64,000 bases of DNA from Mytilus californianus (taxonomy: Eukaryota), in the NCBI RefSeq assembly GCF_021869535.1, contig NW_026262581.1:97588001-97652000 (forward strand). Direction: 5' to 3'. The translations under genes were made by a program, and so were the position numbers. Shown here one piece after another: positions 1-50,860 of this stretch. The stretch's first letter is position 1, and each line of letters starts with the position of its first letter. The notes under the pieces are model-generated. The model was not told the DNA's origin. It saw only the letters and a list, made by a program, of their open reading frames with translations, and did no database searches.

Positions 1-2980
1 CTTCCACCATGGGACTCGTAGTCTCCGAGGTAAGTATTGTTTGTCCACAGGTACACAGCAATCCTCCCTCCTGCTCCACCTCCACCAGAACCTCCAGAAT
101 ATTGACTGCCACCATTTACAGCAATAGTTCCTAGACCTCTAAAAACTCTGCAGTAAATCCAAACACTGCCACCAGAGCCACCACCACCACTTGCTGCCCT
201 AGCATCACCACCATTAGCACTCAAACGTCCATCAATCTCTATCATATTGGTGGCATTTAGCCACAGCATGCCACCACCTTGGCCACCATCTCCACCACCA
301 GCACTACCATGTATAAATGGCTGATATAGATGTCCATATGGTTGTCCAGTCAGTGTTGTTCCTGCACCTCGACCACTTGTACCACCATGACCAGCTCCAG
401 ATGATCCTGAAGTGTGAGTTATTCCTTTACCGATGTTTATGTCTTCTGCTTGTGTATCAGTAGATCTATATCCCAAACTGTCTCCATGTAATGCACCCCC
501 ATCGTCTATAGTGATATTAATTGCCTGAATTGAAGCATTAGTGGCAACAAATGAGCCTCCTCCTTCAACATACATGCTGAAATTAACAAGGAAATTAATT
601 CCAGATTCTGTCACAGGATCAGTCAAAGATGTGATGGTGGCATTTTCTTGAACTCTGACCCAGTTAAACTGGAAATGATCTGCATCTAAATCTTTAGTAA
701 ACCCTCCACTTTCCAATGACAGGAGTCCATTGTGATGTAAGGTTATGTTCTCTATATTGGCAAGTTCTCCATGCATCCAGATACTGACACCATGTACAAT
801 TGTCATAGGAGCTAAACCTAAGTAAGACCCAGCATATGCCCTGACACTGAATGGCAGATCAATTTCTTCTCTTTTAAGATCCATAATTTGGTTGTTGCCT
901 AAATGAACAGTTCCAGATCGGTCCCCTATCATGTACAAGAAAAAGACATCAACTTCATGATCAAGTGGTTCAGGCAAGAAAGCCAAATGGGCTGCCCCAT
1001 ACATTTGGAATTCATTAAAGTGATATTTGTAGCCACCTCCTGCAAAGAAATGATTACCAGAGATGGGTAAAATCCATGTTCTACAACTATCAGAAGACAA
1101 ATCAGAATAATCATCAATAACATTGAATTTGTCCTTTGGCTGGTGACCTCCATTGTCAATAATCAGAGTTTTATGATCCTCAAGCATGTGATAGACAAAC
1201 ACTGTACCAGCGCCACCATTTTCAGCAGAGGACCCACCCTTGCCTCCAATAGCCTGGAATCTGAAAGATGTCATAGTTTCATTTCTGTTGAAATAGACTG
1301 CCACTCTGCCACCAGCTCCACCACCACCTTTTACATGTGTGGCATTTCCACCATGAGCAGTTATTTTACCATAACCTTTAATAAGTTCACAGAACATCCA
1401 GACACTACCTCCACTTCCTCCAGCAGTGCCATCACCACCTTCAGAGTTGACCTCTCCATCAATATGTACTGTATGTGTCACATTCATCCAAATGACACCT
1501 CCTCCTGAACCTCCAGACCCAGCAGAACTTCCTAATTTAATTGGTTCATAGATATTACCATAGGCAAACCCTGCCCTCTGAGAGTTATATCCTTCACCAC
1601 CACTCCCACCATGGCCCCCACCACCATAGGTACTAAGGGCCTTTCCAGGGTTGACATGTCCATGAACTGAAGTACTAAAGTGTGTGGTATTACTATGTGA
1701 TGGTATATAACCTTTCCCTTCTGTTGTAATGAAACCTCCAGCATCAACAGTGACATTTGCCACATTATATGTCATATGAGTTCCATGTATTATTCCACCA
1801 CCTTCAACAGTTACAGCTTTCAGATGGAAGTAAATTCCAATGTCTGTCACTGCATCTGTTGTGCAATCAATCTTTCCTTCATCTTGGACTAGAATGTAAT
1901 CAAATGTATAGTGACTGTGAGGGTTTCCCTGTGTTCTACCACCATTTTGTAACCATAAATATCCACCATGGTGAATAGTTATGTTTTCGATATTTGCTAA
2001 AACACCTGCCAAATGTATTTCAACTCCATGGACATATGTCATGGGTGCAAGGCCTAGAAATCCATCAAAATAGACGTAGCAATTAAATGGCAAGTCTATT
2101 TCTTCCCTAATTAAATCCATCACTTGTTTGTCTGCAACATGTACTGTGCCACTCCTGTCACCAATCATATATTTGAAATCAATAGTAACATTAATATTGC
2201 TAACAGATCCAGACACTGCGGCATCAATCACACTAATTTCAGAAGGATTCAACACAGCAAGGTGGCCATTGCCATATATTTGAATTTCCTCAAACTTGAA
2301 GATATAAGCACCGGCTGCAAAATCATGTATACCAGACTGTGGCAGAATCCAGGCACGTCCACCATCCTTTGTTACATCATTCCAGTTGACATACTGATTT
2401 AATGGTTCAGGAGCCCCATTGTTGTCAATAATCAAAGTTCTGTGGTCCTCAATAGTGTGATACAAGTAGACAGTCCCTGGTCCTCCAACCTCAGCATTCT
2501 CTAACCCTGGCCACCCACCATTGGCGAGATATCGGAACTCGCTGAATGTATCATTTTTCTTAAAGTACATTGCAATCCTTCCACCAGCTCCACCACCTGC
2601 TCCGTAAGATGTTGATGGATAAGTTGTGTGGCCATTGCCATCAGTACCAGTGTGCCTATAGGTGCCCAGAGTCCCATTTCCACCACGTGCCAGTATTGTT
2701 CCATACCCAGTTATCCTGTGGCAATGGAGCCATATACTCCCTCCACTACCACCACCCGAAGGGTAGTCTATTACCCAACCAGTGCTTGCTATTGAATTGT
2801 AATTGTATTTAGTCTGTCCATTCTCTCCACTGGCTGTGAGAGTTCCATCAATCATTATAGTATTAGTAACATTTAACCATAGTCTACCACCGCCAGCTCC
2901 ACCAATACGGCCTCCACCAGAACTGCCAAATAATGTGGGTTCATATAAATCTCCATAGGGTTCTCCTCCTTCATTATTAT
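1..2980 (-). CDS. Exon 27: at least 2980 bp, about 993 aa, two full repeat units plus a further Gly block; runs off the window
   Basis: AG at 2982-2981. One reading frame (codon starts at positions 2 mod 3) holds from NNEGGEPYGDLYEP to ...DYESHGG at position 4. It is absent from the ORF track, probably because it has no stop codon in the window. Confidence 0.92.
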
Positions 2981-5900
2981 CTAAAAAAAAATCAATTAAA
3001 AGGTCTGATCATCTTTTCAAAAGTTTGATTTTTCTTTGAATATACTAAATATTAGGAAAATATAGTAAATTTCAACATTTAGAATTTATGAACTGAAATG
3101 ATTTTAGATGGATAAAGGAAAGTATAAAAATGTTGAGAAAAATCTAGATGTGATGAAGCAAAACACTAATGGCCCATCTGCTGCCTAATTTCATTATTAA
3201 CAGTTCCTTAAAAAATAATACAAGCCATATTTTTAGAGAAATTGAAATATTTATATTCTTTTTATAAGTTTTGTTAAACTTTTATAACCTTTAGTCAGGA
3301 GACACTCTATTTCATAATCTTTTTTCAAGCTATCTGAGAGAAATCTCTAAAAATTATTGATAACATGACTTCAGTCCCCAAAGTTCATTTTTAAGTATCT
3401 ACTGAGTGTTCAGTAAACATACAATATCCTCTTCCTCCACTTCCTCCATGGCCAGCTCCTGATGCACCAAGGTTACCAGTCAGACCCAGTCCAGGATTGA
3501 TGACACCATGTAATCCCTTCCTTGGATTTCCAGAAGAATCTGTTCTCTGTCCGTCTGCTTGTTCATAACCCAATCCATCACTGGTGAGAGTACCACCTGA
3601 ATCAATTGTAATGTTTTCTGAGTGAAAATAGACATAAGTTCCACGTACCAATCCACCACCATCAATATTAAGGGCAACTGTGGAAAAAGATATGCTGGGT
3701 TCAGAAACTGGATCACTGATCATGTGAAGATATCCTGCATTTTTAACATGTACAAACTGAAAACTGTAGGTACTAGCATCCAGTCCTTTAGTTCGTCCAT
3801 CAATATTCAACCAGAGTTTTCCTTCATGATGTAAGGTCAGGTTTTCAACATTGGCCAAAGTTCCATTTAAGAAGATATCCACACCATGTATGAAAGTGTC
3901 TGGAGCCAAACCAAGGTAACCACCATCATATACATGGACACTGAACGGGAGATCTATTTTCTGTCTCTCCAGATCCATTACTTGTCCTTTTCCTATATGT
4001 ATGGCTCCAGATCTATCTCCAATCATGTTCTCAAAATAAATTGTAGCATCACTTTCTACTGGATCTGTTAGTACTGCTAACTGAGCCTTTCCATAAATCT
4101 GAAGCTCATCAAAATGGTACTTAGAGTTTGACCCTGCAAGATAAAGACATAAAATTTTCAAAAAGAAAAGAAACTAAATACTGACAAGTCTTTCACATTT
4201 TTGTGAGAGGCACAGAAAATGATTCATACAAAGCAATTCATGTTCATGGGTTGTCAATTCTTATAAATTTTGACACAAGCAATTAATTCAGGATGCATTC
4301 TCAATAAATATAAGTTATGTTAAATCCAAGCACTATGTTTGCAAATTACATCAATTTTTGTTAAAATCCTAGCATAAAAAGATGATTCTACAAATTTTTG
4401 TAAATTTTTTTTTAAATGCAAGTTAGGTTATAATATTTCTTTTAATATTTGGTACCTTCAATCACATTGAAATAACATAGTGCATATATATAGATTTGTT
4501 AAAAGCCTAGCATAAGAAGACATTTCTCAAAATTCATGATTTTTAAACAGAAAAAAGTTTTTACCTCAATCAAAAAAAAAATTCAACACCTGGAATCAAT
4601 TCAGAAAAGCTTATCATATCTATATATCAATTTTCATTGAAATTATAGCACAAAAATATGTTTCTCAAAATTTATGAATTTTTAACAAAAAAGGTTTTTA
4701 ACTCATTTGTTTTAAATATTTGACACCAGGAATCAATTTGGAATAGATTTTTATATCTATATATCATTTTTCATTGATATCCTAGCACAAAAAGATGTTT
4801 CTTAAAATTTGTGTATATCTAACAAAAACTAAATTTTTAAAGGTAAAATTCACCCCCAAATAATTACAAAAATGTGGGAATCAATTTTGTACAGAATATC
4901 ATAATGTATATGTTAATTTTTGTTAAATTCAAGTACAAAAAGAAGTTTCGCAAAATTTTTGATGTTTTAACAAAAACTAAGTTTTTTACCACATTTTCTT
5001 GTACAATATTCACAAAAAAAGGAGCCTTTCTTTTATAGGTATTAATACTGTGCATACAAATTTTGAAAACTGGTTGAGGCAATGTTGACTTATCATAAAG
5101 TTTAATATAATTTAACTGTCTGAAATCAAGGGATTAAGAGCTTGATACATTCAATAGAATTTTTTCTATTCTTGAAGACAATGTGTAAATCTCTAGATGT
5201 CTTCATGGTTGTTTTGTTTTGCTTGGTAGGTGTTACTTTACATATATCCCATAACTCCTTTTACTGAAAATCATTCCATACCTTAAAATGTATAAAAAAG
5301 AAAATGTAAAGCTAAACGTATGACTTTTTCTAGTATAAACGCAAGTTGTCTTGCGGTAAAAAGGTCTTCTAGTAGTATAATTTAACCCCAACCCCCACCC
5401 CCCTCCCCCCCCCATAAAAAAAAAACAACATTACATACTTAAGTTTTTACATTACATACCTGCAAATGTATGTTTGCCATGTTCAGGTAAGAACCATGCT
5501 TTAAGCTGATCAGAATCAAGGTTCAAATAATCCTCTATTGTATTTGTATCACCATCTGGTCCCCTGTTTAAATTGTTCAGCAATAGGGTTGTGTGATCAT
5601 ATACTGTCAATAAAGCAGTAAAAAATTATTTTGAGCAGAAATAACCTTCCATAATAAAATGATATATTATCATTAACTATTTTTGAAACAGTTTAATTTT
5701 TTTTTCAAATCCTGTAAATTCAGAAATTGTTGCAATGTTTTTATTTTATAATGCAAAAAATATGACAGTTTCAAGTTTGCAATAATAAAAACTTGAATAC
5801 ATAATTTCAGTAATGATTTTCCGCCATAAAATTTTTGCATTAATTAAATTTCACATTTTTGCCAGTGGTCATTGCAATAATAAATGCAGACATTAATTTC

Positions 5901-8900
5901 TGAATTAACAGTATTGGCATTAGACTCTTAATTTTACTGAATTTTTTGTAATTTTCAAAGAAGAAGAAATATCTACAAGAAGACATAATACCCCACCACA
6001 CTTTCACATTTCCATGTTCAGTGAACTGTGAAATAGGGGATCAAAGTTGATGTGACCAAAACTTCATAGGAATCTACATTAACCTTAAACTTTAATATAT
6101 ACAGGGTGAAGTAATGGACAAGTGGACTAATAGACAGACAGACAAATGGACGAACAATCAAACAGACACACTTACCTGAAAACATTTCCCCCCCCCTCAC
6201 TTCTATTGTAGGCTGAAAAATATTCTATATAAAATAATTCTCATGTTTGTGTCTAGTTGAAAATATTTCAGACATAAGAAGACTGACTACTAGTTGGCAA
6301 TGGATTAATTGGTATTAAAGCTACCAAACAAGGTAAAGCGGCAGACAATTTTATTTCTACTGAAATAAAGGGTCAGAAATTTAACCTTACATCAGATCAT
6401 CTATTGATTATTATCAAACTGCTGCGCAAGTTCATTAAGAATCGTCATCTCCAAACACATGCCTAGGATTCACATTCCTAATCAGGCTAAAAATGACTGT
6501 ACTGTCCGATAAAGGAAGTCATAATAACATTTTTCTTTACCATAACCATCCTTAAGGTTAAAAAATACTTATTTCTTATAAATTAATTTTAATATACCTT
6601 TATGATGGAAGAAGGATGTTCCAGGACTACCATTATTTTGTCCCAGACCACCATAGGTATCAAACTGTCCAGTGAAAGTCTTGTTCTGTGAGAATTCCAT
6701 AGATATCCTGCCTCCAGATCCAGCCCCTCCATTGCCATTGCCATTACCTCCAATAGATTGGAACTCTCCATAACCCTGGTAGTAAAATAAATAATAATTC
6801 ATACTCGTATAGAATACTTTTAATTATTACCACTACTAGTGAACAGTTTAATTAGGAAGGTGATTTAATATAGATCAGCAACTACAATCGTGGATTGTTT
6901 TATCTTTGTTTACCAGCATGGTAATACCAATTACAATAGACATTTGTCTTCTTTAAGGTAGATGGGGGGCGGGCAGGGTCTAAGTTAAAATAGATATATT
7001 TTATTAAATCATTTGCCAAAATGTAGTTTTTATCTTGCTTTTTTTTTTTAAATATAATAACAAGTATGGGTCACTGGGCTTTTTTATTGAGCTACAGTTT
7101 GTGCAAAATTGTCAGATTCTGTATATATTATAAATGGAAAAAACATTTTTGTTTTGATAGAAAACTAAATATAGAATTTGAAGACAAAGTATGAGAAGAT
7201 AGCTCTTTTAATGTGCTTCCAGAAAATAAAAAAATATATATTTGGGTCAAAAGACTTGTTTTCTTGCTACAAAACAAAACAGGTTAATTCATAACACATT
7301 CCTTTATAAAATTAACATTATCTGAGTTATCTCCCCTTATTTGGCAAAGTTTAGATGAAAAGGAAAATAGTCTAACCTTAATGTTATTGATGTCAATATT
7401 GATGGAGCCACCACTGCCACCACCAGCATTACTTGATCTTCCATTCTCCCCGTTAACACTAATCTGTCCATCATTTTGTAATGTAGTAGTCACTTTCAGA
7501 GTGATAACTCCTCCTCCTCTGCCTCCTGTGTTGGAATTACCATTATCTCCTCCTTTACAACCTCTGTCTACAGCATCAAATACCTGTCCATAAGGGGCAC
7601 CTGTTTGAAACTGTCCTGAGCCACGTCCACCTCTACCTCCATGTCCAGCACCTGTTGATTATAGAAATGTGTAAGGTAAACTACTTGATATTCTTATGGA
7701 CTGATATAAAAAGAAAAAAAAGGTTTTAGTTTCCTGAAGAAATGGGACAATTGAAAACAAAAGTAAGGTCCCAAAAAGAAAGGGGTATTTTAAATTTATG
7801 GAAATACTCTTTTGTTAGTTTTAATGAATTTTGTATTACTGTGGATTCATTATTATTAGTCTGAGAACAATGTTCATTGATTTCATGGGCACAGGATAAC
7901 TACAATTTAAATGTTCAAAAAGTACAAATTTTCAATTGGCTTGTGTGCAGACTTATGTAAAACCACAAATTAAATCAATTAATCCACGAATAAACAATTT
8001 TTCTTTAATCCATGAAAGTTGGTACCCCACAAAAATAAATGAATCCACAGTAGTCTATAATTGAATGACTACATTTTATTCAAAGTTCCATTATTCATGA
8101 AATGAGTATGTCTTTAATCATTTTCTATGCATCACCAAATGGTTTTACCTGAACCTCCAGTGGAGGAACTATAACCATCTCCTTTGCTACAGGCCACATT
8201 ATGTACATCTCCAATGATCTGTCCCAGGTCATCTACAATCAGAGTATCAGCTGTAATATCCACATGCACTGCATGGACATGGCCTCCTCCTTGCACCCAT
8301 AGTTTATTAGCCTAAAATATACAAATTTTAAGGTTAGATAACAAGATGCCTGATATCAACATAGACTGCATGGATATGACCTCCTCAGTTTACTGTTGTA
8401 ATTTTTTTTTATAAAAGAAATACCAGGCATGATGTTTAGTTACTGTTATTGGCAAGGTAAATGTGTATGCTATGTCTAAACTATTTGTAATGCCATTACA
8501 ACTAATGGTCGAAAATGTCTTCAAAATATTACTTCCAACTACTTGTGCTTGCTATAAAACAAATATACCTCCATTGTTTATAATGTTTTGGCTTAGTTGT
8601 GCAAATATGCTGCAGTCTTTCCCTACTCACTGTTAAAACTATCCTATATTATTTTTTGTGTTTATCAACTCTCTCCTTCACTCTCTACCTCTACTACTAC
8701 ATGTACTTGTCTGCTCACTGTAATAGTCATGCTACTTCAGTATCAATACTTCTTTTATCAGTAATAGTTCCTGTGTTCCCCTCTGATTCTATACTCACTG
8801 TAATAGCCATGCTACTTGTGCCATCTGTCAAATCATGGGTAACAGTCACTTCACCTCCAGCTTTAACAGTCAGTGTATTAAAGTCAAATATTCCTGTCGG

Positions 8901-11900
8901 ACTGACTGTTGATATACCCTGGGTATTTCCTGTAGAACCAAGGTGAAGGTCACATGCATTTCCAATAGTCATGTCTACAACACCCAGTGAGCCCCTAGAA
9001 TAAAAGGAACCAATTTTTTTAATCTGATGATATAGATTAAGAAATGAACATACTGCATATTAAAGCATTATTTTCTGTTACAAATATCAATTTTAATCAT
9101 TATTTTTTGCAGATATATCGAAATGAAAAAATTTGACAAAGCATAACTTTTTATCACAGTCAAAAATGCAATTCTGTTTAATTTGCCTAAAACTACATAC
9201 TACATATATATATATACATAATAAAACATCAATCAATAACGTCTGTACATAAAAATGTGATATTCATTTCTGTATAACCAAACAAGTTGTCAATATTTAT
9301 AGTTCAATGCAACATACATCAAAAAATGTTCATCAGTTTTCAATAATGACTCACCAAATGACAAAATCTATGCCATAACAGTCAAATGCAGTTGGCAATA
9401 TGAGGGTACCTCCATGATAGACATATACATTAACCAGAAACTCCAAGTCATCTGGATGTTGTACAACAACTGTCTGACCAGGTCCTACATGCAGTACACC
9501 AGTTTTATCTCCCTCAAACTTCAATGATTTAAGTTGGAAAGGACTGAAACAAAATAATTATTACCATTCTTGTTTATAAGATTCACAATTGCATTCATTG
9601 TTTAGGAGAATGCACAATAACAGTTCATGACTTACCTACCTACCTATGTAAAACATATAAACATTTATAGAAAGAATTAGAAAATAAATGTCTCTATCCA
9701 GTGTTCTTCGGAAGTTCTTAATATGCTGTGCCTTGTATTGTTCTGTGTGTTTGTAACTCTACTATAAAAGAGATTTCTGTTTGGCAACTAATGTCAGTTA
9801 AGGCAGAAAACTTCACCAGTTGATTTATATGATATGACTGTTGCATAAAACTGCCTATCTTGTTTTAAAAACATTTACAGGTTATAGATCAATATGATAA
9901 ATGTTTGCTTTTGTTGATACCAGACACTGTCTTGATCTTGCTATGAGGTTTGGGATCTTTCTGCTGAATATTTTACAGCAAATGTCAAATAAAGAACAGC
10001 AATAAATGCTTTGAACTATTTCAATTTCAATGTTTCCTGATTTTTTTCCTCGCATGTTTATTCCTCTGTAATACCATTTAAAGCATGTTTTATAAGTTGC
10101 ATTTTTTACATGGTTTTTGTGATCAGTTTTAATGCTTCTTGTATTCTAATATACTGATTTATCTGCCGATGACACTTTTCTAGAAGAAACAGATGTTTAA
10201 TAACTTGATATTATCTTGAGGACAACTACTTCTACAAACCATCAAAATATCCTCAGTTAGAAATATTTGTGATGTTTTAATTTATGGAAAGGTAAAAAAA
10301 AAATAGTTCTTTTTTAAAGCATGAGCAGGAATTGCATTAAAAAAATTTTTTTTTTGTCAAAACATCAACAAAAATAAACCCATATGATAGAGTAGACTAA
10401 GAACAAGTTCAGATATGAAATTCTGACTAAGGTACTACACAACTGATAATACCCAACTACTTACTATGTAAGAGAAGGATGTAATGCCAAGTTAGCTTTT
10501 CCCTGGATCCTCAAGTTTTCAAAGTCTTTGGTATTGTTATCAGATATCCATGTTCTACCTGGATCAGCCTCATACCCAGATAGTGTATAAGTTGAGATCT
10601 CACTTTGGATGACAGACTGACCATTGTTATCTAGAATCAATGTCCTGTTTATAACATCTGTTATAGTATCCTGTAATTATTGATAGATGCATTATACATA
10701 TCTCTCAGGAGAAATGTCTACTTATTAAAAATAAAATACCATTCAAAATCAAATATTATATAAAAATTATTAGGTAAACTGAATATAAGGGTAACTAAAT
10801 GTCAACTATCTGTGGTAGAGGCAGGCATTAATATTTCAGGATTATTTTTATTCCTTCAATTTTCTTTCAATAGCTTTCTAAGTTATCATTAACCTGTAGG
10901 TATATAGTTCCAGCCCCTCCTGGACTGGAGCCTGTTAGTCCACCATAAGCTGTCCATTTTCCTTGCCAAAACTGAGTATCTTTATAATAAATCATCATCC
11001 TGCCTCCTCCTCCGGCTCCTAAACTCACACCATTCCCTCCATTTACCTGTCAAAACATCAAAATCTATCATTCAGAATAACCCTACCTTAATTCAGAGTA
11101 TGTTACATTTCAACAAATATAATATCATTGGAAGTACTTTTTATATAGCTAAAAAATGTTATGAAAATACAATTACGAATTAAAAATAATGGCACTGTGT
11201 GTCCAAAACATCTCATAAAGAAGATTTTTATGGAAAGTAAACAAATTAAAACCTCATTTGTTATATAATAATTCTCATGTATTAGGTAACAACAATACGA
11301 GATATCAGCAATATTCTTTAAAATATTTTAAAAGTTTTGAGCTTCACATTTCTTTCACATACAGATTGACAAAATGTTTTCTAGATGTCTCTTTAAAATT
11401 TCTTTCAAGTTTCTCCATGGTTTTTAATTAGTCTGTATAAAAGTTACTTTGACCCTCATCGGGTTTTGAAGGACAACTTGAAGTTAAGATTATCTGCCCA
11501 ATGTGACTGGCATGTTTATCCTACATTAAATAGCCTGTCCAACTTACCTGTAATGTACTTTTTCCCACTATAGAATCAGTGGTTATATAGATACAGCCAC
11601 CACTGCCACCAGCTGCAGTATTGGTAGAACCCGTCAAGACCATCTGATACCTGTACAACTTACCTGTAATGTACCTTTCCCCTCTATAGAATCAGTGGTT
11701 ATATAGATACTGCCACAACTGCCACCAGCTGCAGTATTGGTAGAACCCGTCAAGACCATCTGATACCTGTACAACTTACCTGTAATGTACCTTTCCCCTC
11801 TATAGAATCAGTGGTAATATAGATACAGCCACCACTGCCACCAGCTGCAGTATTGGTAGAACCAGTCCGACCATCTGATTTTAATGTTCCTTCTACAATC

Positions 11901-14900
11901 AGTCTCTGTGTTGTAGTTATCACCATCATTCCTCCTCCTGAATGTATAAAACACTTTCAATACCAAATACAGATTTATTTTCAAAGTAAACTATATCATA
12001 GATATATAAATGGTGACCTGTAATTGTTCACATCTTTGTCCTTTTGGTCTATAGATAATTGGCCATAGATTGTTGTCTTATTGGCAATCATGAAATTAAA
12101 GTTTATAAATGCATACATTATGTATGGGTCCTTAGTTTCTTTTACATTCATTCTACATAGAAGGTTACCAGGAAAGGTCCTTAAACTTCATGATGAATAG
12201 TAAAATCATATAAGAGATATCTCTTATATGATTTACTATTCATCATGAAGTCTCTTATATGATTTTACTATTCATCATGAAGTTTAAGCACCTTTCCTGG
12301 TAACCTCCCATACGTAATGTATGCATTTATAAACTTTAATTTCATGAAAATTTGGCCTCATATTTATCTGTTATAGTAGCTATTGTACATAAAAAAAATT
12401 ACTACCAAAAAAAACTGAATGCTTTTACTGCCAACATTATAGTTATCGGTATATCCAAGAGTTAAAGTAACAATCTGACAATGCCAACACTAATTTTATT
12501 AATTCCTTTTAAATGCATGTTCCCTAGGACTTTTGATCTGATGCTTGATAAATAGAAAAATAATTCTTTTTGGAAGATGCTATAAATTATAAAAGTACCT
12601 GAACCATAGGACTTGCTAGCACCAAAACCACCACTACCAAAATAACATGGTCCATATAATGATCCATATTCCTTTCCAGGTAAAGATCCTGTAAAAAAAA
12701 AAGAAAATTGTTGAATTAAAGTTGAAAAAAAGCTGTCAAGTATGGAAAATATCTTACAAATACAAAACATCAACAGAAAATATTTATTTCTCCAATTGAC
12801 TATTTAATTAACAAATAACCTGAATCTTAAAGCAAAAAAACTAGTTGACACTAGTCACACTATCCAATATTTTAATTTTTTAAACCACTTGATTATTCCG
12901 AGCTATAATCCGACACCCCGAAATTCAGACAGTCCGATAAGCGGTTAGTCTGACAGTCCAATAGCCCGATGGTCCGATAAATTGACAGTCTGTTAATTCC
13001 ACAGTCCAATGTTCCGACACAAAGCCATGCTGCTGCATAGGATATGGATCTCGTCTTCATATAAGCTTATTAGTATACTGTCAAAACGCGAGCAGTGTTT
13101 AAAATTTAAAAAGTGGAATGCGTTGTTATGGGATCCAAATTAAATCCTATACTGTTTGAACAATTAATCTAAGATTCCATTCCTGTTCATCATGTCGTAG
13201 TTGATAATGAGAATGTCTGTTTACATGCATGCACATGCACGCGCATATAACTAATTATGTGGTTGAATGTGAAATGTCACATGTGTTAGATGTATGCTTC
13301 TCATATCTGAGGGGCTAACATCAGATTGATTTACATAGAAGTAATAAATAAATTTTTTATATTTTCTCTTGTTCTTAAAAGAGTAATTAGTTTTGATAAA
13401 ATAGGAACAGTGTCATTATCTCAAATTTTCCAGATGCAGTAAGACTTTCAGAAGATGTTTCATAGTTATGGATTTGGAATGAAATCTTAATAAATTGCGT
13501 CTATTTTTCTGTCATCAAAATGATACCTTATCACTGCTTTTGTATGGCAATATAAATCGCTGTACTATCTTGTCTTTTTCTGGTTTAATTGCCAAAACCT
13601 GAACTTTTTGCTGATAAATGATAACACTTCTATGTAAATTATAATATGAACCTAAGCATTCCTAGTCATAGAATCATCACGACATAACACCAATTATGTG
13701 AAAAAGAACGGAACGAAGATGGCCAATGACTTGAAGACAGTACTTATTCACACTTAGCAGACAAAGCAGATAGTAGTTAAGACCGATGGCTGCAGTGCTG
13801 AAGGTCCCTGGTTGGATTCTGACTCTGGGCGCGAGACATTTCATTAATCAGAAGGGTGAATTTCACTCTCCCTCTCACATCTCTGGTGCCCCCAACTTTA
13901 ACCTTGAAATCAATCTGTTCCCGCCGAGCAGCTCCGTGGTTCTATATGAATACTTCAGCTTCTTCCACCATAATAACAGACTTCCTGATGTCCTAGCGCT
14001 CCCTTTGTGTTGAGGTGGGGATTGCCCTTGTACATATTGTTGTAAATACGTTCTTGACACATCTCCATTAATCCAGATAGGGAGTGTAATCGGATTCCAC
14101 TGTACCCTCACAGCTTTTGAGGGGTGCTCCCAATAATGAAAGGACTCTACCAGTATATATATACACTACCACAAGCTCCAACTGTATTATCCTCAATGCG
14201 AAGTGAACCCTCTTTTTCCTCATAAGCAAACAGCTCTAGATTGTCCCAACAACATAAGAGAGCAATCAAATCAAATGGTTTGACTTTAAATGTACAAGCA
14301 TATACTAATATATAATATGCGATGGGTTAAATTAGTTCGCTTGGACCCAAATCAGCCCTATGTGTAGGGTCATACTTAAAAGAGTCTGTAGAAGTCTGTT
14401 GGCCTAAATTTCGTTTAAATGTGTTATTAACAATAAAATATTTAAAATGAGTTATATTATTAATATGAATCTTTCTAAGTCATTATTAACGGTAAAAGTA
14501 GATTTATAATAACTATAATCACTGAACATTGGACTTCCTGATCTCCGGTAATGGCAACCTTAGTGTTTGGTACAGTTTTGTTGCTTAAAACAAGTATTTC
14601 ACATATAAATATATATGTGTTTTTATGATATTTTAGTGTTAAAAGTCAACTTAGAAATTTAAATATAAAACACCCAACTTCTTAAAACACTAAAATATCA
14701 TAAAAACTAGAGGCTCTCAAGAGCCTGTGTCGCTCACTTGATTCTACTTTGGTTTTGGAAATCATGTTAAAATAGATTAAAATCATAACAGATACCCTAA
14801 TAATGAGGCCAAATTTGGTTTAATATTGGCCCTGTAATTTAATAAAAAATCCTGGTGGCCATCTTGAACAGTAAATCAGCAACAAAGTAGCAACACTTCA

Positions 14901-47149: not shown

Positions 47150-47180
<31 letters not shown>

Positions 47181-50100
47181 ATCAAATGGTAGCTCCCTAT
47201 ACAACTTTTTTCAAATTAACTTGGATTTTAATAAAACTCTACAGCTATCTCAATCATATATTGATCTTACAAAATGCAAGGTTATTTGGAAGTCAGGTTT
47301 ATTGGTAACTGTAAATGTAAGGATTTATTTAAAAGGTAAAAAAGCAAGAATTTTCAGTTCGAGCTAAATTCGCAGCTATCTAAATCATATATTGATATTA
47401 CAAAATGCCTGGTTATTAGTCCCCTACCGTCAAAGTCAAAGGGGACTTTAGGTTTGCACTCTGTCCGTCTGTCTGTCTGTCCATCTGTCAGTCTGGCAAA
47501 TCAGTTTTCCACACTTTTTTTCTTCGTTCTTGAAGATATTGATTTGGTTTTTGGTGTATTGTTTTATCATGACAAGTTACAGATCATGTTCGAATTTTAT
47601 TTATCAATTATTATGTCAATGATAGACTAGGATTGGTTTTTTGTATATATGTATCTGCTTCAGCATGGGAATTGTTTAGGAAATACACATGTATTTAAAT
47701 ATATAGCCTACTACCTAAGATTTTTTTCTTACTAGATATAAAATAAAAGAGCCACCCCCCCCCCCCCCCCCCCCTGGATCCGCCACTGACAGTGCTATAG
47801 TGTACAGTTTAAAAGTGTTTACTGAATACTGTACTCTTTAATTTCCACGATTACGATCCGACCTCAAGTCATAAAGCATATGAGGCACATCTGAAAACTT
47901 TGACAAACGTCACATATTTCAAAAATTCATGGCTATAGTTACAATATGACGACGAAAGAGATTTAAAAACTATTTCCAAACGATTAACAATCGAAACGAT
48001 AAATTTTAAGTCCCATTGTTTTTATTTTTGGATACCCTCGGGACCTTTCAATGAACCTCATTCAAGTAAATATGTTCCGCGTGCGCTGTTCAGATTGGAT
48101 AACTAGAATTCTGATTGGTTGAAAAAGTCACATGCAAAATCCTTCAGAAGTGAAACCTTATACGGGTAGTTGTTAGATCTTCGTATGTAGTATAACGTAG
48201 TATAACGAAATCCGAGATCTATATTTTAATTAGATTGTATCACCAACCAAGCAGACAGTGAACTTCTCCAGAAAGACTTATCAGCATTGGAAGACTGGGA
48301 AAACAAATGGCAGATGAGTTTCAATGCCAAAAAATGCCTTGTCATTAGAATATCACCAAAAAATCGACCAGTGATACAAACATCATACCAACTACACGGT
48401 CATACTCTAGACACAGTGGAAGCGAGCAAATATCTTGGAGTAACCATCAGCAACAACCTAACCAGGGACAAACACATAGACAATACAGTAGGCAAAGGTA
48501 ATAGAACGTTGGGATTTATACGTAGAAATCTCAAAGGCTGTACAAAACCTGTAAAGGCAGCTGCATACGTATCCATGGTAAGACCTGCAGTGGAATATGC
48601 ATGCACAGTATGGGACCCAACAACCCAAAATAAAATCAAGGCAATTGAACAGGTACAGAAAAGAGCAGCACGATTTGTGAATAACAACTACACAGACCGA
48701 ACACCTGGCTGTGTCACAAATATGGTCAAAAATCTAAAATGGGAAAGCTTAGAAGAACGGAGGAAAACAAACAGACTATGCATGCTATTCAAGATCCAGC
48801 ATGATCTTATAGACATAGACCGTCACCAATATTTAACTCCAAATGATAACCGGACCAGAGGTAAAAACCGCTTCTACCAAGAAAGAACAAGTACAGACGC
48901 CTACGGCCAATCTTTCTTCCCGAGGACCATCAGGGATTGGAACAACTTACCAACATCAGTTTCATCGGCCAACACCGTTGAGGGATTCAGAGCTGCCCTT
49001 AAGGCATGCTCTGAAAGGAAGTAGGAAACACCAGTTGTACATAATTTTAATTGTATAATATTGCGAACGTTTTAAATGTAATTTGTAAATAGCCAAGAGA
49101 GAACTTTCTGTGTTGCCTGACACTGCGTAAAGTTTTCGCGCGGAACCAATAACATTCAGTTTTGAATCCGGTTCCTTACCTGGAAGAAGAAGAAGAAGAA
49201 CATAAAAAAATAAATATACCATAATTGTTGTATCCATACAGCTTTACCGACATACTAATACCATTATTCCACGTCTGAGGATAAAACCGTATCTTTGATG
49301 TGTAGATTGGCGCAACAAGGTCGTTGTAAACGATGCCGTTGTTATCAGTATTACCGGAAAACCCATTTGATGGATATGATAGAGTAACCTGGAATGTATG
49401 TTAACGTATTTTTCTCATTTGGTATACAAATAAAGTAGGAATAAACTTTAAAATAATTTCAATTAATAAAGATATCTAATTTGTTCACTATTTTTTTCAT
49501 TTATTTGTAATTAAATCTCTGTCGTTAGCCCGGACAAAATATCACTTTTTGCCAAATATGTTAAAATAAAATGATACTGAACAGTTGAATTTATCATCAA
49601 CCAATCAAATAATATTATAGAAGAGATATTTTAAACTTTTCCACGTCTTTTGATTGGATCCTGGTCTAATTTCTGCTTCGATTAATATTTTCAAAACGAA
49701 ACCAACATGGACTAATGTTGAATATGATTATTGGTTTTCGTATCATAAAAAAAATGAAATTATGTTTGATTTGTTTTTGTGTTTGTTTTTTCTCTCTTTC
49801 TATTTTTTCCCCATAGATTTCACCGGAATATGTTAAACTGAGAAATTTGAAATAGGATATTCTAAGACCACTTCTTTATTTAAAATATGATATTCTATAT
49901 AAGACTAAATCTTTATCGAAGTTCACTTGTTTCATACCCATGCTGAACTTGTGTCGTTGTAATATTGGATTTTAAACGTCTTAATCCACATATTATAGGA
50001 CTGATGTCCTCTAGTGGCGACTCGAGTAATCCATTTGGGTGAAGATAATGAAGCTTGTAACCACTGGTCTGTGTTGAAATAATATGCCCGCCAGGAAATA

Positions 50101-50860
50101 GTTGAACTTTTTGTCATGTCACCGTAGGAAGCAGCTGCATGCCTTGCTGATGAAGCTGTGGTGGACTGCAGTGTTAGTTGATTTACATCAGCTACGAAAA
50201 GTAAGGCGTTATTAAATGTATAGTAATGATAAGAAAATTTTTCAGATTAAGAAAAGCGAATGGATATTCTGTTTCCTCTTGTGTCATGATGAAATGATGT
50301 TATGATTTACCTCATGACAAAATTCTGATATTAAAAATGAAAGTTTATTTAGATCTGCCAAAGAATCATTACAAATCATATTCGTGTTTGTTTTTTTGTT
50401 TTTTTTCTAATCTTCTGAATTAACCAAATAGTTCAATTATTTCATAATTGCTTACTGGAACATTCTCCACCATCTGCAAATATGTCACCACTAAATGTTG
50501 CTGAAACTCTGTGAACAATAGAAATACGTCCACCTCCGCCTCCTCCGCCCGTCCCGCTTCCTGTTCCACCACGTGCTGTAACCATTCCACTTCCTTTAAA
50601 ATAATCTGTGTCTATGTAAATACTTCCACCGCTGCCACCACCACAGTTACTACCGTCAGCGTTACCATTAGCAGATACCAATCCATCAACCCTGACGTCA
50701 TCTGTAGCTTTCAATGTAATAACACCGCCTCCTTTGCCACCGGTAGAACAACCACCTCCACTTCCAAAGTCACTTGGTTTTTCGATGCCACCATATGCTA
50801 CAGCTTCGTTGGACTTTAGATATATACCAGTTTTCATGCCACCACGTCCACCATAAGAAC
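1..50860 (-). CDS. Giant Gly-rich repeat extracellular protein with an inserted F5/8 type C (discoidin) domain; 27 exons, about 3260 aa in window, partial at both ends
   Basis: Manual exon chaining on the minus strand: every junction has AG/GT and matching phase. Recurrent motifs GAGHGGxGG, YGxxxxPxxxGSxGG, GGGSGGSIxI, GGGGGRI, GGPGT, TLxIDN, GDxSGxxH. Many NxS/T sequons. No start or stop codon found in the window. Confidence 0.9.
3423..4133 (-). CDS. Exon 26: YHFDELQIYG...MIGDRSGAIH...DLPF...GAGHGGSGGRGY
   Basis: ORF 3391..4161; acceptor TTGCAG, donor GTATGT; phase 1 to 1. Confidence 0.92.
4355..4990. repeat. Degenerate about 138-bp tandem repeat (about 5 copies) in the intron between exons 25 and 26
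   Basis: CCTAGCA(T/C)AAAAAGATG-like units near 4368, 4505, 4643, 4780 and 4930. Confidence 0.6.
5460..5603 (-). CDS. Exon 25: YDHTTLLLNN...KAWFLPEHGKHTFA
   Basis: Acceptor TTGACAG, donor GTATGT; phase 1 to 1. Confidence 0.87.
6598..6775 (-). CDS. Exon 24: GYGEFQSIGG...GAGSGGRISMEF...GSPGTSFFHHK
   Basis: ORF 6569..6802; phase 0 to 1; donor GTATAT. Confidence 0.9.
7377..7651 (-). CDS. Exon 23: AGHGGRGGRG...APYG...GGRGGG...GGGSGGSINIDINNIK
   Basis: ORF 7284..7493 extended; phase 1 to 0; donor GTTAGA. Confidence 0.9.
7839..8050. mobile_element. Tc1/mariner-type MITE (TA|CTGTGGATTCATT...AATGAATCCACAG|TA)
   Basis: TIR plus TA flanks; a second copy lies at 29697-29904. Confidence 0.8.
8149..8311 (-). 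CDS. Exon 22: ANKLWVQGGGHV...IVDDLG...GYSSSTGGS
   Basis: Phase 0 to 1; donor GTAAAA. Confidence 0.87.
8799..8994 (-). CDS. Exon 21: GSLGVVDMTIGNAC...FNTLTVKAGGEVTV...SSMAIT
   Basis: ORF 8727..8972; phase 2 to 0; donor GTGAGT. Confidence 0.87.
9355..9543 (-). CDS. Exon 20: PFQLKSLKFEGDKTGVLHVGPGQ...VYVYHGGTLIL
   Basis: Phase 2 to 2; donor GTGAGT. Confidence 0.87.
10465..10670 (-). CDS. Exon 19: DTITDVINRTLILDNNG...RTWI...FENLRIQGKANLAL
   Basis: Phase 0 to 2; donor GTAAGT. Confidence 0.87.
10894..11046 (-). CDS. Exon 18: VNGGNGVSLGAGGGGRMMIYY...GGAGTIYLQ
   Basis: Phase 0 to 0; donor GTTAAT. Confidence 0.88.
11548..11880 (-). repeat. 116-bp tandem repeat (about 3 copies) of exon-17 3' end plus GTAAGT donor
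   Basis: Donor-adjacent positions 11780, 11664 and 11548. Confidence 0.92.
11780..11937 (-). CDS. Exon 17: GGMMVIT...AAGGSGGCIYITTDSIEGKGTLQ
   Basis: AG at 11939-11938, donor GTAAGT; phase 1 to 0. Confidence 0.85.
12088..12347. repeat. 260-bp foldback palindrome
   Basis: Arms nearly perfect around a loopless centre at 12218/12219 (AAGAGAT|ATCTCTT); 33-bp bulge in the left arm, 31-bp duplication in the right arm. Confidence 0.9.
12599..12688 (-). CDS. Exon 16: SLPGKEYGSLYGPCYFGSGGFGASKSYGS
   Basis: Within ORF 12462..12773; phase 1 to 1; donor GTACTT. Confidence 0.85.
13757..14276 (+). mobile_element. tRNA-derived SINE, about 520 bp
   Basis: A-box-like ..AGTAGTTAAG and B-box-like GGTTGGATTC in the head; central TACTTCAGCTTCTTCCACC core; (ATCAA)n tail. 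Confidence 0.55.
14705..16242 (+). mobile_element. Helentron/pearl-like non-autonomous element with about 8 x 166-bp internal tandem array
   Basis: GGCGGCC recurs at 15020, 15186, 15352, 15518, 15684, 15850 and 16016 (period 166). A (GAC)n microsatellite follows, then the hairpin AGCTCACTTGGCCC-TTT-GGGCCAGGTGAGCT at 16207-16237. Confidence 0.8.
16851..17175 (-). repeat. About 70-bp tandem repeat (5 copies) of exon-15 3' end plus GTAAGG donor
   Basis: TTTGACCTTAC at 16852, 16921 (degenerate), 16991, 17061 and 17131. Confidence 0.9.
17142..17352 (-). CDS. Exon 15: VQKSGHTG...SASGYGY...GGGYGGRGGANSAS
   Basis: ORF 17083..17358; donor GTAAGG; phase 0 to 1. Confidence 0.88.
17413..17618. mobile_element. 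TA-flanked MITE (CTGTTAATTCAGAAATT...); related copy at about 5712-5911
   Basis: Inverted ends CTGTTAATTC / GAATTAACAG with TA flanks. Confidence 0.65.
18111..18238 (-). CDS. Exon 14: ATLEFEESSNRNLTFSNFTVQNGGKLEL...YHLQ
   Basis: AG at 18240-18239, donor GTACTT; phase 1 to 0. Confidence 0.82.
18465..19942. mobile_element. 1478-bp P-superfamily-like non-autonomous element
   Basis: 29-bp perfect TIR CATGGAAGTATTATATTGACAGGAACTAC; 7-bp flanks ATAAAAC / ATGAAAC (1 mismatch). CATG termini and a 7-8-bp TSD are typical of P elements. Confidence 0.75.
20010..20585. mobile_element. MITE with AGGTCCAGTAAG / CTTACTGGGCCT ends
   Basis: Imperfect inverted termini. Confidence 0.55.
20736..20955 (-). CDS. 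Exon 13: STRYRRANVTYHPFIY...GDLAHLLVST
   Basis: ORF 20722..20931 extended; phase 0 to 1; donor GTAAAT. Confidence 0.85.
21752..21936 (-). CDS. Exon 12: AVAFLLP...YDFTMVEIYGGAHL...GDDTGHLH
   Basis: ORF 21731..21955; phase 1 to 0; donor GTTAGA. Confidence 0.88.
22166..22345 (-). mobile_element. SINE 3' fragment with (CAAT)n tail
   Basis: Minus strand reads GGTTCTCTCCGGGCACTACGGCTTCCTGCACC, a common invertebrate SINE core, followed by CAAT repeats. Confidence 0.55.
22531..22591 (-). CDS. Exon 11: VTEPSGTTADISHFNTYKST
   Basis: 61 bp; acceptor TTTGTAG, donor GTAAAT; phase 0 to 1 is required to bridge exons 10 and 12. Confidence 0.75.
22775..23448 (+). mobile_element. Helentron/pearl-like element with about 3 x 169-bp array and (GGAC)n, inserted into an interspersed repeat
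   Basis: GACCTTGACC at 22891, 23060 and 23229; sub-terminal inverted GGGCCCCGCTG / CAGCGGGGCCC. The host repeat continues on both sides. Confidence 0.78.
23866..23963 (-). CDS. Exon 10: GSGYEPGGPGIMYFHGKTSRNLRVDNKCQKPM
   Basis: Within ORF 23770..24042; phase 1 to 0; donor GTAATT. Confidence 0.85.
24606..24789 (-). CDS. Exon 9: VTNAGGGSGGSLYV...GGGGSGGRINFFF
   Basis: AG at 24791-24790, donor GTTAGT; phase 0 to 1. Confidence 0.88.
25243..25484 (-). CDS. Exon 8: Gly block GASGGSYGARGGRG...PYGSIF...GSGGG...GGRGGG
   Basis: Phase 1 to 0; donor GTAGGT. An alternative in-frame donor GTAATA 6 nt further would end the exon at 25237. Confidence 0.85.
26006..27041 (-). CDS. Exon 7: 1036-bp beta-strand-rich segment ending LDVSGGGYLNSKGT
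   Basis: ORF 25935..26987 extended to the acceptor (VATTYNKIRARY...); donor GTGAGT; phase 0 to 1. Confidence 0.9.
27258..28219 (-). CDS. Exon 6: 962-bp beta-strand-rich, non-Gly segment
   Basis: ORF 27246..28151 extended to the acceptor (AVAWINDDSF...); donor GTTTGT; phase 1 to 0. Confidence 0.9.
29697..29904. mobile_element. Tc1/mariner-type MITE, same family as 7839-8050
   Basis: TIR CTGTGGATTCATT, TA flanks. Confidence 0.82.
30983..31120 (-). CDS. Exon 5: GPGGPGTIFLAQSG...FDAASS
   Basis: ORF 30975..31208; AG at 31122-31121; donor GTTTGT; phase 1 to 1. Confidence 0.85.
31309..32893. mobile_element. 1.6-kb non-autonomous TIR element (YAGAGCTCCAGATAAG)
   Basis: Inverted ends at 31309 and 32893, ACTGTT on both flanks, subterminal AAAACCCAAT repeats. 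Confidence 0.75.
34162..34190. repeat. 29-bp hairpin flanked by 7-bp direct repeat GTCCTAC
   Basis: CAGAGACATATA-TGTAT-TATATGTCTCTG; GTCCTAC at 34155-34161 and 34191-34197. Confidence 0.8.
35234..37549 (+). pseudogene. Broken transposon-borne gene C-terminus: AT-hook-like KR(G)RPKG, VIGLP motif and PHD finger
   Basis: Frameshifted pieces ..KKR/RPKGFTQTVTCVIGLPKK..LVWFV../..EEEHVETSPE..DAWKS, then an insertion, then ICNFC..VMCSSCLQWQHLSC..WFCNTC (C4HC3 PHD spacing). Confidence 0.75.
35771..37350. mobile_element. Nested TIR element (CAGGGGCGTAGCTAC...GTAGCTACGCCCC) interrupting the PHD gene
   Basis: Inverted ends; AAATC repeated on both flanks (35766-35770, 37351-37355). Confidence 0.75.
38737..38781 (-). 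CDS. Exon 4: 45-bp Thr/Pro-rich linker micro-exon (GTVSVPPTTCSSTTT)
   Basis: Acceptor TTTTATATTACAG, donor GTAAGC; phase 1 to 1; joins in frame to exons 3 and 5. Because it is short, a chance match cannot be excluded. Confidence 0.6.
38936..38971. repeat. 36-bp perfect palindrome flanked by 7-bp direct repeat ATCATTG
   Basis: CTGGGACTATTATACTAA|TTAGTATAATAGTCCCAG; ATCATTG at 38929-38935 and 38972-38978. Confidence 0.88.
40183..40370 (+). pseudogene. Decayed N-terminus of a RecQ-like SF2 helicase inside the TIR element
   Basis: From ATG 40183: MAT*KWKNNIENALTEILP*YKVKELKFEKRQILEIKDCMVRLPT, then after a frameshift ..TGYGKSL.. and YQI. This resembles RecQ motif I (KD.xxxLPTGxGKSLxYQ). Confidence 0.6.
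40952..41350 (+). repeat. Abundant interspersed repeat family (GATGTGGTATGATTGCCAATGAGACAAC...); longest copy
   Basis: Same sequence at about 22705-23540 (interrupted), 29245-29690 (-), 31145-31265, 52960-53150 (-), 58970-59140 and 62990-63090. Confidence 0.8.
44130..45169. mobile_element. Helentron/pearl-like element with degenerate internal tandem units (inside the 8.24-kb element)
   Basis: Recurrent GACCTTGACCTCATTTTCATGGTTCA / ACTATATTTGGTGTA units; a degraded copy lies at about 46020-46550. Confidence 0.6.
46673..47197. mobile_element. PIF/Harbinger-like MITE copy with nested insertion
   Basis: Same TIR as 60447-60728. Confidence 0.75.
49220..49388 (-). CDS. Exon 3: C-terminal half of discoidin domain
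   Basis: VTLSYPSNGFSGNTDNNGIVYNDLVAPIYTSKIRFYPQTWNNGISMSVKLYGYNNY, matching FxGNxD...PI...IRxxPxTW...ISMxxxLYG. Acceptor TTCCAG, donor GTATAT; phase 0 to 1. Confidence 0.85.
49938..50191 (-). CDS. Exon 2: N-terminal half of F5/8 type C (discoidin) domain
   Basis: Translates DVNQLTLQSTTASS...SWRAYYFNTDQWLQASLSSPKWITRVATRGHQSYNMWIKTFKIQYYNDTSSAW, matching the discoidin pattern WLQxxL...xxxVATxG...WxxxxKIxY. Acceptor TTTTCGTAG, donor GTATGA; phase 1 to 0. Confidence 0.85.
50456..50860 (-). CDS. Exon 1 (most 5' found): Gly-rich block SYGGRGG...GGGSGGSIYI...GGGGGGGRISI...DGGECS
   Basis: ORF 50442..50837; acceptor AG at 50862-50861; donor GTAAGC after 50456; phase 1 to 1. Confidence 0.9.

Follow-up and report, generated by a model that had tools for sequence, protein, structure and literature searches.

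Two groups of described proteins come closest to the gene considered here. The first comprises bacterial fibrillar adhesins, such as TibA, Pet, Ag43 and EtpA, and the tapirins, all of which are built on a long parallel beta-solenoid. The second comprises proteins with glycine-rich, polyproline II (PPII)-type packing. To our knowledge, few solved structures show such packing so far, and it is relevant to protein design. Surveys of PPII bundles list antifreeze proteins (AFPs), Obg, acetophenone carboxylase, gp38, ALK/LTK, some phage fibers, PE_PGRS and plant glycine-rich proteins (GRPs). The subject here is a giant gene in a 64,000-nucleotide (nt) stretch of DNA from Mytilus californianus (contig NW_026262581.1, positions 97588001-97652000, in a 1.65-Gb eukaryotic assembly). 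This whole stretch is referred to as the window, and gene coordinates are given as positions within it. The gene encodes repeated units, each consisting of a glycine-rich cassette with six motifs and a glycine-poor spacer; the cassette family is not among the domains in two PPII-bundle surveys. A first-pass annotation, made from the letters of the window, had noticed the giant glycine-cassette gene, and this observation is confirmed. It is probable that the window contains the 5′-most third of a very large, functional mollusc gene, whose secreted product would be a rod or tether of ~32 solenoid units with a discoidin head and a base of EGF, LamG and VWD domains.

How does this protein compare with the described systems? 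First, it resembles the bacterial adhesins (TibA 4q1q, Pet 4om9, Ag43 7koh, EtpA 8cpk) and tapirins (6n2c) in its long parallel beta-solenoid, with Z of 8.7-11.2 over ~210-240 residues, and it resembles the adhesins in the logic of a stiff stalk with a binding head. There is, however, no detectable sequence relationship. The mussel protein is eukaryotic and multi-exon, with ~32 units, and it has glycine cassettes and animal extracellular matrix (ECM) domains in place of a beta-barrel or two-partner secretion (TPS) anchor. Second, the cassette resembles collembolan AFPs (Granisotoma 7jjv, snow flea 2pne) in its predicted flat two-layer solenoid and in its glycine-rich segments, which may also share their triplet periodicity. 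In the cassette model, however, one layer is a true beta-sheet with 11-residue strands, and the triplet runs extend for only 2-3 turns. Moreover, the collembolan AFPs are free ice binders of 80-130 amino acids (aa), whereas the cassette is a module of a giant protein; the likeness is structural only. Third, the glycine-rich domain of ALK/LTK and the tip protein gp38 of phage S16 also have glycine runs followed by hydrophobic residues and are also extracellular, but neither has a sequence match at E<=10, gp38 aligns with Z of only 3.5, and the mussel protein has no TNF-like partner domain.

Exon chain and extent of the gene

Glycine-rich open frames lie on the minus strand only (stop-to-stop scan of the window), the largest being 1,002 aa at 3-3008. 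The window is ~33% G+C, and GC skew is negative across the exons. A unit profile, A1, was built from 113 aligned units. Across 224 kb, it matches 74 minus-strand open segments and no plus-strand segments at i-E<1e-3, so the repeat is far beyond chance. This profile search replaced a tblastn search of the window with the large exon, which recovered few 5′ cassettes. Exons were delimited by combining profile matches, splice signals, and DNA and protein conservation with a paralogue, in which exons are kept and introns are not. All searches of multi-exon parts were run exon by exon, and folds were likewise predicted for single-exon segments, with no spliced protein.

Inside the window, the chain consists of 25 exons on the minus strand, from 50860 down to 1, with GT-AG introns and compatible phases. 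The 25 exons contain no in-frame stops and total 9,598 nt, or ~3,199 codons including split codons (3,184 full codons). This is in line with the earlier estimate of a giant protein of more than 3200 aa with at least seven cassettes; seven were counted. The frame is indeed open at both ends of the window, with the 3′ exon continuing below base 1 as part of a 1,328-aa frame and the 5′ exon lying outside. No exon of the giant gene was found between 50861 and 64000. Introns 1 and 4 are 15.6 kb and 21 kb long, respectively. The exons and cassettes are listed below with their basis; all are on the minus strand. Identities are to the paralogue unless the Saccoglossus protein P0121 is named.

Exon 1, L009:2488-2800, 2.5-2.8 kb beyond the high end of the window: signal peptide; 39% identity to paralogue exon 1.
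Exon 2, 50456..50860: 405 nt, phase 1 in and out, cassette 1, motifs 2-5; profile 23-165 (E 2e-29), AG/GT sites, Saccoglossus P0121 residues 110-240 at 49% identity, kept in the paralogue.
Exon 3, 49938..50191: N-terminal half of an F5/8 type C (discoidin) domain; PF00754 positions 3-77 (E 1.6e-8), kept in the paralogue.
Exon 4, 49220..49388: C-terminal half of the discoidin domain; PF00754 82-124 (E 2.3e-5), phases, paralogue 54%, P0121 349-394.
Exon 5, 27258..28219: long glycine-poor, beta-rich spacer, part 1; 327-aa open frame, paralogue 51% over 324 aa, splice sites.
Exon 6, 26006..27041: long spacer, part 2, with its 3′ end opening cassette 2; paralogue 54% over 347 aa, P0121 709-1054, splice sites.
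Exon 7, 25243..25484: cassette 2, motifs 1-3; profile 13-92 (E 1.6e-9), P0121 1263-1347 at 45%.
Exon 8, 24606..24789: cassette 2, motifs 4-5; profile 95-152 (E 2e-9), P0121 1351-1411 at 49%.
Exon 9, 23866..23963: cassette 2, motif 6 (GGPG); paralogue 82% (aa), P0121 1414-1450 at 59%, splice sites.
Exon 10, 22531..22591: short spacer exon; 76% aa identity to the colinear paralogue exon, splice sites, phase.
Exon 11, 21752..21936: spacer with the GDxTGxxH motif; profile 233-285, paralogue 83%, P0121 1466-1529.
Exon 12, 20736..20955: spacer; paralogue 75%, P0121 1535-1605.
Exon 13, 18111..18238: spacer; paralogue 57%, splice sites.
Exon 14, 17142..17352: spacer end and cassette 3, motif 1; profile 384-428, paralogue 59%, donor.
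Exon 15, 12599..12688: cassette 3, motif 2 region; strong acceptor, phase 1-1, kept in the paralogue; the least certain borders of the chain.
Exon 16, 11780..11937: cassette 3, motifs 3-4; profile 66-120 (E 2.6e-11), the best donor score of the chain; 3′ part and donor triplicated in the adjacent intron.
Exon 17, 10894..11046: cassette 3, motifs 5-6; profile 120-180, paralogue 80%.
Exon 18, 10465..10670: spacer; profile 186-253, paralogue 68%.
Exon 19, 9355..9543: spacer; profile 261-312, paralogue 72%.
Exon 20, 8799..8994: spacer; paralogue 65%, splice sites.
Exon 21, 8149..8311: spacer end; paralogue 70%, P0121 1984-2024.
Exon 22, 7377..7651: cassette 4, motifs 1-4; profile 21-113 (E 2.5e-26), P0121 2037-2126 at 52%, donor.
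Exon 23, 6598..6775: cassette 4, motifs 5-6; profile 112-182 (E 2.5e-11), P0121 2124-2192, splice sites.
Exon 24, 5460..5603: spacer start; profile 183-231, paralogue 75%, splice sites.
Exon 25, 3423..4133: spacer and cassette 5, motif 1; profile 229-428 (E 3e-77), paralogue 79%, P0121 2238-2475 at 58%.
Exon 26, 1..2980, continuing below the window (1,328-aa open frame): rest of cassette 5, spacer, cassette 6, spacer, start of cassette 7; 1,002-aa open frame in the window, two full unit matches (E 1e-133 and 6e-181), dN/dS 0.11.
Cassette 1: exon 50456-50860.
Cassette 2: 25484-23866.
Cassette 3: about 17230-10894.
Cassette 4: about 8190-6598.
Cassette 5: about 3480-2440.
Cassette 6: about 1640-1180.
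Cassette 7: about 420-1, running off the window.

What lies at the two ends of the gene? The first-pass annotation had suggested looking for a signal peptide in the missing ends, and one was found at the 5′ end: exon 1 begins with MKGFLALIFLLLICVDFTKSAS ahead of a C, a typical signal peptide. This N-terminus is kept in the paralogue, and the Saccoglossus protein has a signal-like N-terminus. Exons 3 and 4 together encode one discoidin domain. They form a 423-nt block with phase 1 in and out and could therefore be skipped in frame, but a discoidin domain is found at the same place in the paralogue and in Saccoglossus (F5/8C domain at residues 256-386), which argues that the block is a constitutive part of the gene. 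Discoidin domains bind carbohydrates or lipids. Toward the 3′ end, cassettes continue along the minus strand down to 97,473,678, making ~32 in total. At L016:5120-6751, a single exon reads, without a break in the frame, from the last spacer and cassette into teneurin-type EGF repeats. Since no intron separates them, the solenoid array and the EGF part belong to one protein. Beyond this exon are further EGF_TEN repeats, and then an exon of 2,604 aa that encodes Laminin_G_3, EGF and four stretches of VWD. The signal peptide, the discoidin domain in the window, and the EGF, LamG and VWD domains downstream support an extracellular protein, as had been proposed.

An alternative is that the model is wrong in scale, with several shorter genes or decaying copies and no single giant transcript. 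The fragmentary public models of relatives (mostly 1,200-4,500 aa), introns 1 and 4 with their transposon fragments, and a model built from sequence logic and orthology all speak for it. It is nonetheless quite unlikely, given that the frame is free of stops and the phases are compatible throughout the 25 exons, that the only signal-peptide exon found is at the 5′ end, that the Saccoglossus model spans the same joins, and that solenoid and EGF sequence share an exon. The identity of the protein as Tenascin-X, the automatic name of its sea cucumber homologues, was considered and rejected: EGF repeats are present, but fn3 and Fibrinogen_C gave no match in the downstream region examined, which stops short of the extreme 3′ end. 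The “Tenascin-X” label of the Apostichopus copies probably reflects their teneurin/tenascin-type EGF repeats.

Predicted fold of the repeat unit

The unit is ~420 residues long (period ~410-425 aa), with six glycine motifs in fixed order followed by a spacer containing GDxTGxxH. Across 115 aligned cassettes, the consensus is GAGHGGSGG / FGSxGG / GGxGGGxLW / GGGSGGSIW / GGGGAGGRIA / GGPGTVF. Each cassette has five (xGG)2-3 sites, with 2-3 consecutive xGG triplets per site, and the commonest G-G spacing is 3 (19 occurrences), barely ahead of 2 (16). The statement that this is not Gly-X-Y collagen therefore holds. Indeed, the glycine runs are 6-9 residues, Pro is 2.6%, there is no Collagen Pfam match, and there are no long Gly-X-Y repeats. 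The protein was also said to be rich in NxS/T sequons. There are more than composition predicts (42 observed, 32 +/- 5 expected), but the excess is modest (z ~1.9).

Each unit is predicted with high confidence to be one continuous all-beta solenoid. An AlphaFold2 (AF2) model of a single unit (window 393-1676, aligned with 112 homologous units) has a predicted local distance difference test score (pLDDT) of 95.3 and a predicted template modeling score (pTM) of 0.92; DSSP assigns it 30 strands and one short helix. The beta-solenoid character suggested earlier is thus upheld for the model, but the proposed alternation of discrete polyglycine II (PGII) bundles with solenoid domains is not, because cassette and spacer model as a single continuous solenoid. 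In exhaustive structural alignment, the best matches of the unit are TibA (Z 11.2), Pet (Z 11.0) and a tapirin (Z 9.8), followed by tailspikes, Ag43, EtpA and AlgG; the scores for tailspikes, Ag43 and AlgG lie within Z 8-11. The weak Foldseek matches of the unit are all parallel beta-helices. Neighbors in the ESM Atlas include mollusc clusters (template modeling score, TM, 0.90), a plant cluster with DUF8003 (TM 0.71), Myxococcota, and pertactin/autotransporter proteins (Pertactin, AC_1). The last ~260 residues of the unit are predicted with high confidence to form an ordinary beta-helix like that of bacterial fibrillar adhesins.

Could each spacer instead be a beta-helix with an active site, as in polysaccharide lyases, hydrolases or epimerases, making the protein a multi-site matrix-remodeling enzyme? 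The structural neighbors do include AlgG, RbmB, PL6 and polygalacturonases, and every spacer carries a strongly conserved polar motif, GD[RK][ST]G..H...Q.MDL.R.EIDLPF, whose columns are nearly invariant in the aligned units and which is also present in distant units. However, bacterial homologues keep the cassette without the spacer motif, no Pfam enzyme family matches at E<=1 across 113 units, the Foldseek E-values are all above 0.1, and ~32 tandem active sites would be unprecedented. We consider an enzyme improbable.

The cassette corresponds to the first ~170 residues of the unit and is predicted with high confidence to form four to five flattened coils. Modeled alone (window 1131-1655), it reaches pLDDT 95.5. 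Its first 53 residues and the glycine segments between strands are assigned neither helix nor strand by DSSP, with pLDDT above 90. The first-pass annotation had each of the six motifs followed by a beta-strand. The order of the motifs stands in the 115-cassette consensus, but in the cassette model only motifs 3 to 6, four in all, are followed by a strand. Among solved structures, the cassette matches best a springtail antifreeze protein with nine PPII helices (7jjv_B; Z 8.6, root-mean-square deviation 2.3 A, 101/126 residues). Next come the snow flea antifreeze protein (2pne_A, Z 5.9), the next unrelated fold (Z 5.0) and phage gp38 (Z 3.5). Thus, the cassette superposes on a solved PPII bundle above background, and its xGG-triplet glycine segments are probably in PPII/PGII conformation, packed on a sheet of long hydrophobic strands. 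The suggestion of a PGII bundle survives in part: there is some PGII/PPII character, but the likeness to gp38 is weak and that to ALK/LTK did not materialize. Out of 48,161 chains, the 50 best matches of the cassette model (down to Z 2.2) include no ALK/LTK chain, nor do those of the unit model, and no TNF-like element is present in the secondary structure of either model.

Conservation and putative role

On sequence evidence, the unit family is ancient (older than animals), and it has neither a name nor a model in Pfam or NCBIfam, in keeping with its being called uncharacterized. The unit profile matches 12,301 cluster representatives at E<=1e-3, of which 3,277 reach E<=1e-30; most contain 7-22 cassette matches in proteins of 1,500-6,500 aa. 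Relatives of the cassette occur in Verrucomicrobiota, Planctomycetota, Desulfobacterota, Bdellovibrio, Bacteroidota and several candidate-phyla bacteria. For example, a secreted protein of Bdellovibrio sp. HCB209 (L038:2011-4779) aligns with all six motifs in order (hhalign probability 98.8%, E 9e-17). It shares the cassette and a signal peptide, with homology shown by sequence, but its spacers are short (~100 aa) and lack GDxTGxxH, and it has no animal ECM domains. Of the relatives proposed earlier in bacteria and plants, then, the bacterial ones are found by sequence and the plant ones by structural match only: the plant “glycine-rich” cluster with DUF8003 matches in shape (TM 0.71 over 369 residues), and the DUF8003 model itself has no match here.

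No Pfam model covers cassette or spacer in 8 exon translations and 113 aligned units. The weak Pfam matches are to G8 (4/113 units, best E 0.034, below the cut-off) and DUF5982, and the curated beta-helix families (Beta_helix/PbH1, Pertactin, Chlam_PMP, G8) give no Pfam match for the window exons at E<=1. No NCBIfam model covers the unit. Window 1131-1655 gives a very weak hint of AgmC_N (E 0.022, 13.7 bits where the cut-off is 275). Taken with the Myxococcota clusters among the Atlas results, it points to AgmC, a gliding-motility protein of myxobacteria, as a possible carrier of the cassette. Searches of all PDB chains by sequence (phmmer with a single sequence and hmmsearch with the profile, E<=10) returned no real match, ALK/LTK and gp38 included; matches to kallikrein and to His/linker tags at E>0.05 were set aside as composition artefacts. 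No description of the family was found in literature searched on PGII/ALK/invertebrates, DUF8003, At4g32920/At5g11700/AgmC and PPII bundles.

A second complete giant gene lies at 96.93-97.06 Mb on the same chromosome and strand, 576 kb lower. This paralogue is colinear exon by exon, with its own signal-peptide and discoidin exons; exons are 75-80% identical in nt sequence and introns are unalignable. For exon 26, nonsynonymous divergence (dN) is 0.15 and synonymous divergence (dS) is 1.35 (dN/dS 0.11, 995 codons), indicating an old duplication under strong purifying selection. Orthologues are found in Saccoglossus kowalevskii (XP_077861759.1, LOC144342564; a spliced NCBI model of 4,555 aa, colinear with exons 1 to 26), Ptychodera flava (XP_070533134.1), Dreissena polymorpha (DPMN_117914), Solemya velum (KAL5010959.1) and Apostichopus japonicus (BSL78_07888). 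They share the ~420-aa unit and six-motif cassette, are colinear unit by unit, and have the same N-terminal order of signal peptide, cap, first cassette and discoidin (checked in Saccoglossus), but most models are fragments of 1,200-4,500 aa. Homologues in Dreissena, Nucella, Pecten, Ruditapes, Solemya, Ptychodera, Saccoglossus and Branchiostoma are all labeled “hypothetical” or “uncharacterized”. The top database homologues are single-exon open reading frames (ORFs) orthologous to exon 26 and are therefore silent on splicing. Eight near-identical homologues of ~2,507 aa (cluster P0130/P0260-P0266) each stand alone on a metagenome scaffold of 7.7-8.2 kb, with the ORF filling the contig (for example, ENA L053, 7,810 bp).

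Each of the three units in exon 26 is closer to the unit at the same position in Saccoglossus (49-56% identity) than to the other two (37-43%). Hence, the array of distinct units predates the protostome-deuterostome split. Judging from these comparisons, positions along the rod are probably not interchangeable, the units having been distinct since before molluscs and hemichordates diverged. This bears on the suggestion of non-self recognition made in the first-pass annotation, taken here as a polymorphic self/non-self or immune recognition molecule with the solenoid as a support for variable loops. Such loops are carried by the PGII scaffold of gp38 (bioRxiv 10.1101/2023.11.25.568672), and the idea is favored by a large surface protein with a tandem paralogue. 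Purifying selection and positional conservation across phyla are, however, the opposite of a fast-evolving locus, and the match to gp38 is weak (Z 3.5), leaving a recognition role very improbable.

The distribution of orthologues also bears on a second idea, in which the faces of the solenoid, flat and evenly spaced, would template or bind a crystalline or polymeric lattice (calcium carbonate, chitin, another polysaccharide or ice), and the protein would organize a mineralized or fibrous matrix (shell, byssus or cuticle). The discoidin domain would suit such binding, as would the ice-binding PPII proteins that match the cassette best and the cellulose-binding tapirins, polysaccharide lyases, epimerases and tailspikes among the unit matches. 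However, the antifreeze likeness is limited to a shared arrangement of extended segments, with 23% identity driven by glycine, and the Pfam and PDB searches gave no sequence match to any lyase or carbohydrate-binding module (CBM) family. Moreover, hemichordates, sea cucumbers and amphioxus, which make neither shell nor byssus, have orthologues. Lattice binding is therefore unlikely. The shell or byssus matrix role suggested at first is likewise unlikely, since these soft-bodied deuterostomes have the protein unit by unit.

The account we favor, and hold to be probable, is a secreted rod or tether of ~32 solenoid units with a discoidin head and an EGF/LamG/VWD base. In this account, units would stack end to end into a stiff rod with a length on the order of 0.2 micrometre (~12-15 coils per unit x ~4.8 A per coil x 32 units). 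The N-terminal head, consisting of a cassette and the discoidin domain, could act as a binding tip held away from the C-terminal base, and the EGF/LamG/VWD base may anchor, cross-link or polymerize the molecule in the ECM. VWD domains anchor or polymerize in mucins, otogelin and SCO-spondin. Overall, the protein would serve as a rigid extracellular tether, spacer or fiber, perhaps an animal counterpart of the bacterial fibrillar adhesins; the family is probably of this beta-solenoid rod or adhesin kind, with a PPII-type cassette. Several points weigh against this account. First, the gene model is built on sequence logic and orthology. Second, the stacking, length and stiffness of the rod are extended from one folded unit. 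Third, Foldseek against PDB gave no match at E<=0.001 for unit or cassette, with all E>0.1. Fourth, beta-strands can superpose on PPII helices as well. Fifth, another splicing pattern is conceivable for the C-terminal domains.

A broader reading can be offered tentatively. The ~170-residue cassette may be an undescribed hybrid beta/PGII solenoid domain present in >12,000 clusters, and animals may have built it, before the protostome-deuterostome split, into a ruler or tether of ~32 non-interchangeable units, well over 10,000 residues and ~0.2 micrometre, with a discoidin head and a VWD/EGF base. What would follow if this were true? First, no other natural family with PGII-type packing would approach it in size, its members extending from bacteria to deuterostomes, and among natural cases of glycine-rich PPII-type packing the cassette may be the most frequent. 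Second, the protein would represent a kind of animal matrix molecule that has gone unrecognized and for which we saw no counterpart in vertebrates. Tissue architecture is often set by very large extracellular proteins, such as titin-scale matrix proteins, mucins and Dumpy; here, a giant protein is conserved unit by unit between mollusc and hemichordate, yet no name, domain model or study of it was found. Third, a rigid, length-defined beta-solenoid rod in the animal matrix would be a new principle of metazoan ECM, one seen so far mainly in bacterial adhesins.

Repeats and mobile elements in and around the gene

An interspersed repeat of ~80-320 bp occurs in the window at 22694-22778, 31131-31270, 40948-41264 and 58961-59144, and beyond it at 64085-64324. 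Many copies, 75-97% identical, lie in introns of the giant gene and its paralogue. The repeat is the source of a spurious profile match at 31002-31121 (E 0.008, “GPGGPGT”). This segment was rejected as an exon because it abuts the repeat, has no colinear match in the paralogue, and finds no room left in the Saccoglossus protein.

A tandem repeat at 11534-11879 (116-bp unit, 3.0 copies, 94% identity) covers the 3′ part of exon 16, including the GGSGG-CIYITTDS strand, together with its donor. The triplication leaves two additional pseudo-exon ends with donors in the intron after exon 16, and splicing at either would shift the frame (by 116 or 232 nt). One copy has Cys instead of Gly.

Intron 4 contains two plus-strand ORFs. 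The first, at 39013-39717, matches the reverse transcriptase family RVT_1 (E 2.6e-8). The second, at 48287-49024, has no Pfam match and reads like the C-terminal part of ORF2 of a long interspersed nuclear element (LINE). Both are transposon debris antisense to the gene. Upstream of exon 1, ~10-14 kb above the window, is a minus-strand retrotransposon (L010:102-3924) with three consecutive ORFs: one gag-like with a zinc knuckle, one of 738 aa with RVT_1, and one with an ALOG domain (E 6e-22). We take this set to be typical of DIRS-type elements.

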